From Oculina patagonica (lineage: Eukaryota): DNA of 64,000 nt. The notes beneath the pieces were generated by a model that was not told where the DNA came from, did no database searches, and was given only the letters and a program-made list of their open reading frames with translations. The DNA lies in contig NC_135759.1 in assembly GCF_052425735.1 (NCBI RefSeq), positions 10,230,001 to 10,294,000 on the forward strand. Reading direction: 5' to 3'. The position numbers were made by a program, and so were the translations under genes. Positions 659 to 60,517 of this stretch are shown here, one piece after another (positions within the stretch are counted from its first letter, which is position 1; every line of letters starts with the position of its first letter).

Positions 659-1407
659 TAAGAGCAATTCTTTCATTTAGTCAAGCAAAATGGGAAAAGA
701 AAATTTTTGACCCCACTCAAACTTTGCATGCAGTTAGATATTCAGGGGGGTGTACAAAAATAGCCTTCTTTAAGGTTGTAAACCTTTTTGTTGTCATGGC
801 AACAGCCACTGTTTGTTGGAGACTCCAAATCTGATTTTTTGCTTAGAAAATGCTACGAAATGTGCAAAATTTGAAGTGTTGATCCTAAAGCCCATTAAAA
901 CACTAGTGCTCAAGACTTGTAAGAAATAAAGAACCATCATTCTAGTTAACATTGATGTATAGGACGTTTAATTAAATTAAATTTTTAGCGACTTAATAGT
1001 CAATCAAGTAGGTACGTTTTCGGCCATTTGAGTTGATTGGTAAAACTTGCTAGACGTTTCCTTCAATTTTTCCAAAAGTACACCAGTCCCAGACCAGAGA
1101 CTAGACAGGCAGTTTACATGGATGTCATAGTTTTTAAAACTGTAAAGATCTCTGCGGGGCGGATTATCTTATTCAAAAGAAAAGTTAGTGAAAGAGCCGC
1201 ACAAAAATGGGTATTTGTGTATTTCGGCGATACCAACAGTCTGTCTATTCGCCAACAAAGTTTCTTTCAACACTAAATACGCTATCAGACCAAAAGAATA
1301 ATATATCTGTTGTGACACTGCTTGATCAAAAAGAGTCGTATTTGGCCTCTTTTTTTAAGCAATATTATCAAAGTAAGCTTACCTCGAACACCTTTTCTAG
1401 TGCGCCA

Positions 1408-1450
1408 CTTGTTGTTGTTGTTGTTGTTGTTGTTGTTATTGTTGTTGTTA
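1408..1450. repeat. (GTT)n microsatellite in the left arm of the palindrome
   Basis: About 13 GTT units with one interruption; the mirror site in the right arm (~5003-5017) has only about 4 AAC units. Confidence 0.9.
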
Positions 1451-56768: not shown

Positions 56769-59700
56769 TAGTCCAGCCATATGGTGCTAAAAAATACTGG
56801 AATTGTGCACTTTGGGGTAAAGGCACCAAATTTGGCATGGTGATAGTATTAAAGTTGCTGAACAATATTAGCTATGGACCCCAGCAAGGGGGTGATTTTG
56901 TACTAAGGGGGGTGGGGTGGTTACAATTTTCAAAGAAATTACTGTAATTCAAGAAAAAAGGTGTACAGTTGAGCCGAATTTGTTATATGTAGTAGTACTT
57001 ACTTACTATTCAGGTTGCTGAACAATATTAGGTATTTACCCCAGCAAGGGGGGTATTTTTTGTACTAAGGGGGGTGGGGTGGTCAAAATTTTCAAAGAAA
57101 GTACTGTAATTCAAGAAAAAGGTGTACAGTTAAGCTGAATTTGTAAGATGTGATAGAACTTGCTTACTGTTCAAGTTCCTGAACAATATTAGGTATTGTC
57201 CCCAGCAAGGGTGGGGGGAGATTTTTGTACTAAGGGGGATGGGGTGGTTACAATTTTCAAAGAAGTTACTGTAATTCAAGAAAAAAGTTGTAAATTTGAG
57301 CCGAATTTGTTAGATGCGATAGAACTTGCTTACTGTTCAAGTTGCTGAACAATATTACGTATTGTCCCCAGCAAGGGGGGGGGGGTTGTACTTAGGGGGT
57401 GGGGTAGATGCAATATTGAAACAAATTGCTGTAATTTACCGAAAAGGTGAAGAGTTGAGCTGAATTTGCTATACTAACAGTGCACAATGTCCTGAGATAT
57501 GTCATCTGACTCCAACCAGACATTCTTCACAAACGGGGTGTATAACCAGCACGCAGGGGAGGCGGGTGGGGTAGTACGTACCATGGTATTTTTTGACTTT
57601 GTAAAGTAAGCAAACTTAATCCTCTCCCTCGTATGTCCCGGCAACCGCATTTACAAAGCACAGTCCAAGACATGACAGATTTCTAATATTTACAACGTTC
57701 TCTGTAACCCTAGCATTGCACTCTCATTTCACTAGCTCCCTGGCATGCTGTTGATGCTTCAGGTGATGTGGTCCACCCAGGCTACCATGCATCTGACTCG
57801 GATTGTGCCCATCCCCATTCACTAAGAGAAGGTAGTTCAGGATTAGATACAATGCACTGTCTTCAACAATGACCAGCTTGGTAGGCCACTATCTTGTTGT
57901 GTTGTACTAATGCATTAGCGGTAGAGAGTTGTTCTCAAATGTCCTACCTTCTGTGCAAAAACTAACTTTCCTGGCATCATTGTCTCCTTGGCACGGACTT
58001 GTCTGGTCATACAACAGCACCACAAATCTTTCCAGCAAACGCATACTAGGCATTTTGTTGAGGACCATGAAAGCTATAGTGGCTTCTCCATAGGACATCC
58101 ATGTGGCCCATACTGTGCTCTTCCCTCGTCCTTAGAATGCTGATCACAGCCTGTAAAGGCGTGGAATATATGCAACACTTGTGATTTCTCATCTCCAAGA
58201 GGCCTGACGATATCAAGTATTGCTTACCAACTCCAAATGCAATCACATCTCACTATACTCTTAATTGATTTAGATTTAAGTTGGAAATAGCGAGCATTGT
58301 GACACGAATGTCTTCTGTACGAAGAATTAACTTGCTGTGCACAATCAGATGCAATTAAAACTAGCCTTGTAGCAACCTCCTTGTGCATGCAAGGTGATAT
58401 TTCAGGCGTAACATCAACTGAAGATGACAATACGAGAGTGTCGCTTGTAGATAGAATACATTTTGTTTGCTTCACATGGCAACGTGATCATCTCCTAAGC
58501 TAGATATGCTCTGTTTTGTTGGACTCTTCCTTCAGAAATTCTCCCCACTTAGCAGGAACCCTTACATCTGTTTCTACTGTGGCGACCTGCGACCTGCAAG
58601 TAAGCGTAAAGTCCGACTTGATGAAGTGTATGGAAAAACTGACACCAAACCAATCTATAACCCCAGTAGTAGATGTGATGCTTATCGATGGTACTGCCCC
58701 TGTCAACATATTAAAGCCGTCTGGAACATGTAAAACATTCTCTGGCTATGCATGTCAAGTTTACTTGCCGCAAATCAGTAACCAGCTACCGAGTGTGCAG
58801 CAGATTGATATCATCTGGGAAAGATGCATACCAAACTCGTGACAAGCGTGGAAGAGGTGTCCGTCGCAGAGTAGAAGCAGATGTAAGGCTTCCTGATAGC
58901 TGGGGAGAATCTCTGAAGGAAGACTCCAACAAAACAGAGCTGATTTTATATGTGCGTGCACACCAAGGTATTGAAAAGATAATTCTTTGTACAGTAGACA
59001 CTGGTGTTGCAGTAGTGCTTGTTCTGGAGTTATGAATTGCATTTGGAGTTGGTAAGCAATACTTGACATCGTCAGGCCTCTTGAAGATGAGAAATCTCAA
59101 GTGTTGTACACCTTTACAGGCTGTGATTAGACATCAGCATTCTAAGGACAAGGGAAGAGCACAGTATGGGCCACATGGATGTCCTTTGGAGATCAAGCCA
59201 CTATAGCTTTCATGGTCCTTAGCAAAATGCCTAGTGTGCAGGATGTTCTAAATGCTATGCCTGTGCTGAAAGGATTGGTGGTTCTGTTGTATGACCAGCA
59301 AGCCCGTGCCAAGGAGTCAATGATGCCGAAAAATTTTTTGCACAGAAAGGAAGAACCCTTGAGAACATCTCCCCTACTGCTGATGCATTTAAGTACAAAC
59401 ACAACAAGATAGTGGCCTACCAAGCTGGTCATTGTTGAGGACAGTGCGCTGTATCTAATCCTGAACTACCTTCTCTTAGTGAATGGGGATGGGCACAATC
59501 TGAGTCAGATGCATGGAAGCCTCAGTGGACCACATCACCTGAAGCATCAACAGTATGCCAGGGAGCTGGTGAAATGAGGGTGCAAACCTGAGTTAGGTTG
59601 CCAAGAACATTGTTCAAGACTGGCATGTCTTGGACTGCGCTTCGTACTTGCGGTGGGGAATGCGAGGGAGAGGATTAAGTTTGCTTACTTTACAAAGTCA

Positions 59701-60517
59701 AAAAATACCATGGTATGTACTCCTCCCACCCCCCTCCCCTGCGTGCTTGTTATACACCCCTTTTGTGAAGAACTTCTGGTTGGAGTCAGATGACATATCT
59801 CAGGACATCGTGCACTGTTAGTATGGCAAATTCAGCGCAACTCTTCACCTTTTCGGTAAATTACAGCAATTTGTTTGAATATCGCAACTACTCCACCCCC
59901 CTAAGTACAAAAAACTTCCCCCCTTGCTGGGGACAATACGTAATATTGTTCAGTAACTTGAACAGTAAGCAAGTTTTTATCGCATCTAACAAATTCGGCT
60001 CAAATATACAACTTTTTTCTTGAATTACAGTACTTTCTTTGAAAATTGTAACCACCCCATCCCCCTTAGTACAAAAAATCCCCCCCTTGCTGGGGACAAC
60101 ACCTAATATTGTTCAGGAACTTGAACAGTAAGCAAGTTCTATCACATCTTATAAATTCAGCTTAACTGTACAACTTTTTCTTGAATTACAGTACTTTCTT
60201 TGAAAATTTTGACCACCCCACCCCCCTTAGTACAAAAAATACCCCCCTTGCTGGGGTAAATACCTAATATTGTTCAGCAACCTGAATAGTAAGTAAGTAC
60301 TACTACATATAACAAATTCGGCTCAACTGTACACCTTTTTTCTTGAATTACAGTAATTTCTTTGAAAATTGTAACCACCCCACCCCCCTTAGTACAAAAT
60401 CGCCCCCCTGGCTGGGGTCCATAGCTAATATTGTTCAGCAACTTAAATATTATCACCATGCCAAATTTGGTGCTTTTACCCCAAAGTGCACAATTTTTTC
60501 ACCATATGGTCGGACTA
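56769..60517. mobile_element. Non-autonomous Academ-type transposon derivative forming a ~3.7-kb palindrome
   Basis: Termini TAGTCC...GGACTA; 3-bp TSD TGA (56766-56768, 60518-60520); empty site tctgatggcag at 37081. Frameshifted remnants of an XPG/PIN-like region (KSDLMKC, LIDG, TRDKRGRG...WGEFLKEESNKTE, HKEVATRLVL) and a Cys-rich tail on both strands. Confidence 0.85.
56853..57475. repeat. ~160-bp subterminal tandem repeats (x4) in the left Academ arm, mirrored at ~59820-60445
   Basis: gttgctgaacaatatta...ccccagcaagggg...tgtactaagggggg at 56854, 57014, 57175 and 57341. Confidence 0.9.

Follow-up and report, generated by a model that had tools for sequence, protein, structure and literature searches.

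The 64,000-nucleotide stretch of Oculina patagonica DNA analysed here (the window) contains two palindromic elements, EL1 (662..5747) and EL2 (56769..60517), and raises the question of how transposons could come to consist of two copies of their own 3' end, and whether such elements silence their relatives. A sequence-only reading had described two outward-pointing transposase tails in each and had interpreted them as mobile hairpins that silence their own families; our analysis confirmed the observation, and the interpretation is partly supported. The paired outward tails were recovered by tblastn in both elements, and the kilobase arms measure ~2.2 kb in EL1 and ~1.8 kb in EL2. Both therefore resemble foldback-like or TIR-extended elements, with long arms, a target-site duplication (TSD) and no intact transposase. 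We found no ORF longer than 139 aa in either, and no convincing exon adjoining EL1 or EL2. The proposal that they come from unrelated groups was borne out, as blastp between the two transposase proteins gave no match below E 0.1. We consider it likely that EL1 and EL2 are foldback-like, trans-mobilised inverted duplications of 3' ends, which are parasites of their families and not proven silencers.

EL1 is a single-copy, Sola3-like double-3'-end palindrome whose arms (659-2823 and 3536-5750) align in BLAST pieces that are 90-100% identical, or about 97% with gapped alignment. An apparent identity gradient between the arms, 92% in the outer part and 98% in the inner part, proved to be an artefact of ungapped extension. 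EL1 carries, in inverted duplicate, the 3' end of a Sola3-like element of ~10 kb found on contig C5 (C5:24354405-24364410), one end of which is collinear with EL1 at 90-95% identity. The left tail (2519..3498, minus strand) covers residues 78-322 of the last-exon ORF (322 aa) of this element by tblastn and is collinear with C5:24354405-24356997. It is split by a 499-bp insert (2846-3344). The right tail (3538..3970, plus strand; tblastn and blastn) covers residues about 162-322, the tblastn match running from 3538 to 3942 on the plus strand (residues 162-312), and the right arm corresponds, in reverse complement, to the initial ~2.3 kb of the C5 element. The two tails meet at about 3498-3538 by tblastn with the same ORF, and the head-to-head junction at 3536..3537 joins C5 position 24356997 (+) to 24356712 (-), with about 1 nt of microhomology and zero filler. 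The earlier description of almost no unique spacer holds in that the loops of both elements continue the longer arm, about 285 nt of parent sequence in EL1, but EL1 also has the 499-bp insert in its loop.

The outermost part of EL1 (662..1224, partner about 5190-5747) matches the native TIR of the family, judged by comparison with the TIR of the C5 element. The left flank is interrupted by a nested 171-bp MITE (488..658; termini CAGCAAGG...CCTTGCTG; inverted repeat 484-561/585-662) with TA duplications at 486-487 and 659-660. It sits within the left TTAA duplication of EL1, the right copy of which lies at 5748-5751, and the flanks as found read GTAA/TTAA. Without the MITE and one TA, the left flank reads T(485)+TA+A(661), so that the TSD of EL1 is intact as TTAA/TTAA. 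The C5 element has minus-strand ORFs of 341, 290 and 322 aa and TIRs of 562 bp, and the TIRs of related non-autonomous copies measure 1.23-1.24 kb. The arms of EL1 are more alike to each other (~97%) than to the C5 element (~93%). As to whether EL1 retained the 5' TIR of its parent (TIR-primed wrong-way repair), informative sites were divided 2 vs 2, and 14 informative sites in the 5' TIR comparison unite both arms of each element. Neither strict nor lax Pfam thresholds gave a significant match for the three C5 ORFs, and Pfam does not include a model for Sola (PMC5751038). Four relatives with both ends read have perfect 4-bp duplications (TTAC, TTAG, TTAA, GTAA) adjoining GAGC...GCTC termini. 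The Sola superfamily, treated by Bao et al. in 2009, is reportedly characterized by 4-bp TSDs, the length found in these four relatives and, after MITE removal, in EL1. This length fits the name Sola3-like that we use for EL1.

EL2 is one member of a family of double-3'-end palindromes with at least 20 copies in the genome. Its arms, at 56801-58243(58586) and 58863(59036)-60495, are 89.7% identical, and EL2 contains two degenerate transposase tails, the left on the minus strand (57644..58628, residues about 1172-1522 of about 1530) and the right on the plus strand (58609..59663, residues about 1101-1525). These tails were placed by tblastn with two long ORFs, at 26-44% identity for the left tail match. 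The 276-nt loop (58587..58862) continues the right tail (residues about 1101-1185) and is single-copy. Towards the ends lies a subterminal tandem array with a 161-bp unit, 3.8 copies on the left (56852..57468) and 3.6 copies in the mirror array on the right (59859-60444). The variant copy L043, eroded at its left end, is ambiguous.

The ends proposed for both elements proved to be exact. For EL2 this follows from the boundary TAGTCCAGCC, which is common to 12 of 12 copies with unrelated flanks, and from a precise empty site, as a contig of the public DNA-like run X16 joins 56765 to 60518 at a depth of 89, against about 85 in the flanks. This contig skips 3752 bases, which is the 3749 of the element plus 3, and thus reveals a 3-bp TGA duplication (56766..56768 and 60518-60520), checked at both ends for the copy in the window only. 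The TSDs of both elements are therefore intact, as had been claimed. Because the copy in the window is absent from another individual, it is a recent insertion. Like arms of different copies are 96.9% identical, whereas left and right arms are 90.2% identical, within and between copies alike, which indicates that EL2 was built once and then spread as a unit. EL2 is mobile as a unit.

The closest relatives of EL2 are distant. The element with a 1535-aa ORF (C14:7072202-7076806) has a 3' terminus with the same GGACTA end as EL2 and 76% identity over the last 95 nt, the nearest long ORFs have only ~40-54% protein identity, with the best matches at 47-54%, and a parent copy was not found in the assembly. 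Members of the Academ superfamily have TSDs of 3 or 4 bp (AcademX; PMC10045372, PMC5199201), and that of EL2 (TGA/TGA) is 3 bp. The 1528- and 1535-aa ORFs contain no Pfam domain at E<=0.01; there is a weak DUF6589 match at E 0.02, which is worse than this cut-off. None of 11 genomic XPG_I matches lies near C3:26.94 Mb, C14:7.07 Mb or C7:11.09 Mb, and neither the XPG domain of AcademX nor the helicase of AcademH was found among the ORFs and XPG_I positions searched. The Atlas clusters nearest to the transposases are all labelled 'hypothetical'. We therefore call EL2 Academ-like, by its 3-bp duplication only.

The architecture recurs in this genome. In another Sola3-like lineage, known from match coordinates alone, at least 11 loci have paired outward tails, with inner ends 980-990 bp apart and stop codons in common; one of these loci is C5:24663564-24666148. 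The evidence thus supports three origins, independent of one another, in two unrelated groups of transposons. No close outward pairs occurred among 118 N-terminal-exon matches of the Sola3-like type, among 66 N-terminal matches of the long ORF, among its scored C-terminal matches outside EL2, or among 135 C-terminal (dimerisation-domain) matches of hAT elements. The suggestion of a general route holds to the extent of these three origins in two groups; the hAT result argues that the architecture is not general across families.

We propose that an autonomous element whose 3' end is duplicated in inverted orientation would give rise to a non-autonomous cut-and-paste palindrome. Because such a palindrome carries two equivalent termini, a transposase supplied in trans could still move it. 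The duplication would likely arise while DNA is repaired or replicated, by fold-back or by a template switch to the complementary strand, a step suggested by the anatomy only, namely loops that continue the longer arm and the clean junction of EL1. EL2 would descend from a single founding unit whose arms already differed by about 10% when it began to multiply as a whole, and EL1 would be a younger one-off. The 10% divergence between the EL2 arms is just as compatible with two diverged parents. EL2, and perhaps the third family, could have begun as two diverged copies lying head to head that formed a composite (macro)transposon and lost its interior later, with no fold-back. Arms about 10% apart, with many indels, at the start of amplification are consistent with this, as are two full Sola3-like copies in head-to-head orientation, separated by about 8 kb (C6:31679793-31694914), and alternative transposition makes inverted duplications of Ac (bioRxiv 10.1101/2020.01.07.897926). 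We nevertheless regard such an origin as unlikely, given that the EL2 loop is free of foreign DNA and exactly prolongs one tail, that EL1 demonstrates single-source inverted duplication with a clean junction in this genome, and that no intermediate was found.

Palindromes are also a known class of assembly artefact, produced for instance by fold-back chimeric long reads, and EL1, as a single-copy element, is known from the assembly alone. A fold-back read would not yield arms that differ by about 3% and many indels, a one-sided 499-bp insert or a TTAA duplication, all of which are found in EL1, and this weakens the artefact explanation. The same two distinguishable arms of EL2 occur at 20 or more loci, its centre is present in contigs of four independent runs, and its precise empty site is present in one; that the palindromes are artefacts is thus highly improbable. 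We continue to favour 3'-end inverted duplication with mobilisation in trans.

Under this model, transcripts of the palindromes would fold into kilobase hairpins, and the likely fate of EL2 RNA, as the following results suggest, would be A-to-I hyper-editing. EL2 RNA is predicted to form a ~1.5-kb hairpin in which 1489 of 1638 pairs join both halves, with a predicted MFE of -2692 kcal/mol vs -1004 kcal/mol for one shuffle. Together with the copies and the empty site, this agrees with the description of EL2 as a mobile hairpin element. The four independent public runs with contigs that span the EL2 centre include X1, X2 and X7, whose status as RNA is only guessed, and RNA-like runs yielded no contigs for the unique flanks. 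Contigs of the runs guessed to be RNA contain a cluster of T>C differences at 58058..58220 (A>G on minus-strand RNA) that is a candidate for ADAR hyper-editing; the matching segment of the partner arm is 59059-59221. One contig alone carries 14 such clustered differences, all in the stem. Among the sites listed, 14 of 15 are T in about all of 33 genomic arm segments, and the DNA-like run X16 has no C at the cluster sites. The T>C sites lie in the stem, with none in the loop among the differences listed (27 of the 47 in the key contig). T>C outnumbers A>G by 26 vs 8 in X2, compared with 11 vs 13 in the DNA-like run, and a G stands 5' of the changed site in 1 of 15 cases vs a background of 28%. 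Based on the predicted fold and these contigs, EL2 probably forms double-stranded RNA, and the apparent restriction of the cluster to the stem hints at ADAR editing of the EL2 hairpin in vivo.

ADAR editing normally competes with RNAi, which, if the T>C cluster is such editing, bears on the proposal that the palindromes are self-spreading silencers, in which read-through hairpin dsRNA would give rise to small RNAs against autonomous relatives in the manner of Mu killer and Ac killer. The predicted hairpin and possible in-vivo dsRNA of EL2 are in keeping with this proposal. So is the absence from the assembly of the closest autonomous relatives of EL2, as might follow from past silencing, and there are precedents in plants (PMC3440606; bioRxiv 10.1101/2020.01.07.897926). 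The sequence match to transposase mRNA that the proposal expects was seen for EL1, which has 21-mers in common with the C5 element at 190 positions of the last exon and 590 of the 3' non-coding part, but not for EL2, which has no 21-, 23- or 26-mer in common with the two long-ORF relatives sampled. EL1 could target the C5 copy, but it is a one-off; EL2, given its lack of common 21-mers and the low protein identity of the nearest long ORFs, has no sampled target. Furthermore, EL2 copies about 97% alike and one empty site indicate recent movement, so the transposase that mobilises EL2 was not silenced. The ADAR-type signature speaks for editing and not for dicing, and 3'-end palindromes have no promoter of their own. 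Taken together, we believe that the silencer proposal is improbable. We give as little credence to a broader version, in which promoter-less 3'-end palindromes would be a recurrent and successful class of mobile dsRNA sources in corals that, on read-through, feed ADAR and small RNAs and help to drive their parents extinct. If true, it would account for the missing close parent of EL2 and for why palindromes of 3' ends, never of 5' ends, were seen.

The closest precedent for 3'-end inverted duplication is the TIR extension of Galileo, an element of the P superfamily in Drosophila, in which the final piece of the transposase ORF has been recruited into both TIRs (PMC4168063). The recruited piece measures 69 bp in the D. 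willistoni copy that is most complete and >500 bp in copy 147. The extension was attributed to abortive gap repair, to slippage or to template switching, and the recruitment was called unique to Galileo (PMC4168063). Galileo and Foldback-like elements share with the coral palindromes long TIRs and internal tandem repeats, and many copies consist of TIRs and a short spacer. The differences are the length of the duplications (7-8 bp, against 4 bp in EL1 and 3 bp in EL2), the cnidarian host, and a larger coding piece in the coral, about 0.5-1.0 kb per arm and about 1.3 kb in the longer arm of EL2. In addition, EL1 and EL2 consist wholly of two 3' halves, and the EL2 unit has been amplified to at least 20 copies. 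The recruitment of a transposase tail into both arms has been described only for Drosophila Galileo; the stony coral studied here adds at least two further, unrelated groups of cut-and-paste elements.

The maize loci Mu killer and Ac killer 1 likewise carry part of a transposase gene, with terminal repeats, as an inverted duplication, and their read-through transcripts form hairpin RNA (PMC3440606; bioRxiv 10.1101/2020.01.07.897926; PMC13635294). They are single and immobile, with proven siRNAs and heritable silencing, whereas EL2 is mobile and multi-copy and any silencing by the coral palindromes is hypothetical. In Mu killer it is also the 5' part of mudrA that is duplicated, together with TIRA, in contrast to the 3' ends duplicated in the coral. 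Near-palindromic repeats, such as a Harbinger repeat of the frog, can form dsRNA and be hyper-edited without a neighbouring inverted copy, and hyper-editing is abundant in coral (PMC5625713); in comparison with the frog repeat, the candidate editing of EL2 comes from contigs of runs guessed to be RNA. As ready-made kilobase hairpins, EL1 and EL2 offer good test objects for how cnidarians handle endogenous dsRNA, by ADAR or by small RNAs. They could also show whether an inverted duplication sets off transposon silencing in an animal, as is the case in maize. Such palindromes are also liable to be mis-annotated as pairs of transposase fragments.

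Both palindromes proposed by the sequence-only reading exist in the window (G000:C2:10230001-10294000), each with kilobase arms. The first, EL1 (662-5747), is Sola3-like, with arms at 659-2823 and 3536-5750, and the second, EL2 (56769-60517), has the same architecture; no ORF longer than 139 aa was found in either. The left part of EL1 is collinear with, and 90-95% identical to, one end of a ~10-kb Sola3-like relative (C5:24354405-24364410, the C5 element), and the first ~2.3 kb of this element, reverse-complemented, correspond to the right arm of EL1. The C5 element has ORFs of 341, 290, and 322 aa, all on the minus strand, and the 322-aa last-exon ORF matches EL1 on the minus strand (3498 to 2519, residues 78-322) and on the plus strand (3538 to 3942, residues 162-312). 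As had been claimed, these are two outward-pointing transposase tails. At the junction (3536/3537), C5 position 24356997 is linked to 24356712 of the opposite strand without filler sequence, the microhomology amounting to ~1 nt. The loop continues the longer arm and also includes a 499-bp insert (2846-3344). This insert is present in the left arm of EL1 only, in place of 74 bp of C5 sequence, and had no match in any other locus compared. The inverted duplication postdates the divergence from C5, because the arms are ~97% identical to each other and ~93% to C5; past ~1.3 kb of the arm the only matches are C5 and EL1 itself, which makes EL1 a one-off.

Termini in the EL1 family are GAGC...GCTC, and the four copies compared at both ends have the 4-bp duplications TTAC, TTAG, TTAA, and GTAA. 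As read, the EL1 flanks are GTAA/TTAA. The left duplication is interrupted by a 171-bp MITE with 78-nt inverted arms (488-658), which lies exactly within the TTAA and has its own TA duplications (486-487 and 659-660), a target that suggests a Tc1/mariner type. Because removal of the MITE restores TTAA, the ends and intact TSD previously assigned to EL1 hold. Long native TIRs are a trait of this Sola3-like group (C5 element, 562 bp; three non-autonomous relatives, 1.23-1.24 kb), and the 2.2-kb arms of EL1 far exceed this length and include coding sequence. A third element of the group in the window (31646-36492) has TIRs of ~0.92 kb with GAGG... termini, TTAA duplications (31642-31645 and 36493-36496), and a 408-bp insert (31854-32260) in one arm. 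Its arms occur at least 30 times in the genome at 92-97% identity, a remnant of the Sola3-like catalytic exon persists in several of its 4.9-kb copies, and the full set of three exons is present in a ~10-kb copy (C13:18254330-18264280).

EL2 likewise consists of two degenerate C-terminal transposase tails facing outward. Its arms span 56801-58243 (weaker to 58586) and 58863/59036-60495, and tblastn with the long transposase ORFs of the elements L040 (1528 aa) and L041 (1535 aa) placed residues ~1172-1522 on the minus strand (58628 to 57644) and residues ~1101-1525 on the plus strand (58609 to 59663), at 26-51% identity. The 276-nt loop extends the right tail, and both arms contain a 161-bp tandem array of 3.6-3.8 copies. 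Copies that have both arms number at least 20 in the genome; the boundary TAGTCCAGCC is common to 12 of 12 copies, with unrelated flanks. Between these 12, left-left and right-right identity is 96.9%, versus 90.2% for left-right, the latter being the same within and between copies. These values show that EL2 arose in a single build whose arms were already ~10% apart, and that it then spread as a unit without later homogenisation of the arms. A contig of the DNA-like run X16 represents the empty site of EL2: it links 56765 to 60518 at a depth equal to the flanks, and the 3752 bases that it omits equal the element plus 3. Both ends and the TGA duplication of 3 bp are thereby confirmed, and the insertion is missing from the X16 individual. 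The mobility ascribed to both palindromes thus stands for EL2, but for EL1 the TTAA duplication is no proof of movement as a unit, since in-place rearrangement would preserve it.

The 1535-aa-ORF element has the terminus GGACTA, as in EL2, and its last 95 nt are 76% identical; mobilisation of EL2 by this group is plausible. For a 63-aa piece of the EL2 tail, the best long-ORF matches are 47-54% identical, with no close parent among them. Among related loci, L043 (G000:C11:15722919-15725810) is an EL2 variant without the centre (window 58529-58980) whose arms are 90% alike, and L042 (G000:C3:23855217-23856516) is a solo arm (76-81% identity) with residues 1314-1530 only.

The C5 last-exon protein has paired matches at at least 11 further loci, in every pair with the minus-strand match at the left and the plus-strand match at the right. 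The matches are 35-37% identical to the query, with 980-990 bp between inner ends, and the arms have stop codons in common (one TAG and one TAA; an extra TAA occurs in one unpaired match). These loci, known from match coordinates alone, are a third, independent, multi-copy double-tail palindrome of another Sola3-like lineage. Among genome matches, no close outward pairs were seen for the Sola3-like N-terminal exon, for the N-terminal 400 aa of the long ORF, or for 135 hAT dimerisation-domain matches, and the architecture, which had been put forward as general, is therefore recurrent but not universal. All three double-tail cases use 3' ends (three of a kind by chance alone, p = 0.25). Genome-wide, hAT dimerisation-domain tails occur by the dozen, nearly identical and each within a short open frame (~120-124 aa), and look like a high-copy non-autonomous hAT derivative keeping a single 3' tail. 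Two complete Sola3-like copies at C6:31679793-31694914, both with all three exons, are arranged head to head, their 5' ends separated by ~8 kb, and could serve as raw material for composite transposons.

The assignment to unrelated superfamilies agrees with the unrelated transposase protein sets of EL1 and EL2 and with their duplications of 4 bp versus 3 bp. "Sola3" would be compatible with the former, while "Academ" would fit EL2 by the 3-bp duplication only (PMC5199201, PMC10045372): a search of its long-ORF relatives for an XPG or helicase domain found neither, and a DUF6589 match was sub-threshold. In Galileo of D. willistoni, 69 to >500 bp of ORF end were taken into both TIRs, a feature then thought unique to Galileo (PMC4168063). 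EL1 and EL2 resemble it in this recruitment but are TIR-extended, foldback-like elements of other transposon groups in a cnidarian host, and the mechanism proposed for the origin of their palindromes is plausible.

The sequence-only reading also cast the palindromes as silencers of their own transposon families, which is unproven. Mu killer and Ac killer, which are silencing inverted duplications, do not move (PMC3440606; bioRxiv 10.1101/2020.01.07.897926), whereas EL2 has spread as a unit and was recently still mobile; it also shares no 21-, 23-, or 26-mers with the two sampled long-ORF relatives. EL1 has 190 positions of 21-mers in common with the C5 last exon, but it is single-copy.

Minus-strand RNA of EL2 has a predicted fold of -2692 kcal/mol versus -1004 for one shuffle, and 1489 of 1638 predicted pairs bridge the two halves. 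Contigs from X1, X2, and X7, public runs taken as RNA by guess (no run is recorded as RNA), lie mostly at ~57430-59700, crossing the centre and leaving the unique flanks bare; X16 covers every bin. In X2, a contig of 1053 nt differs by T>C at 15 listed positions in 58058-58220, within the stem adjoining the loop, and no such change is listed for the loop itself (Fisher p = 8e-11 at face value, resting on 27 of the 47 differences of that contig). The T>C to A>G ratio is 26:8 in X2, 14:7 in X1, and 11:13 in X16. At 14 of the 15 sites about all 33 genomic arm segments have T, with no C in X16, and G is the 5' neighbour at 1 of 15 sites versus a 28% background. Palindromic repeats are known targets of ADAR hyper-editing, which is abundant in coral (PMC5625713), and we consider such editing of a minus-strand hairpin a fairly likely source of this cluster in runs guessed to be RNA. 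Contigs from X2 and X7 also contain joints between opposite strands within EL2 (57344/58011 and 58334/58579), for which other fold-back variants, snap-back of cDNA on a hairpin, or assembly effects are possible explanations.
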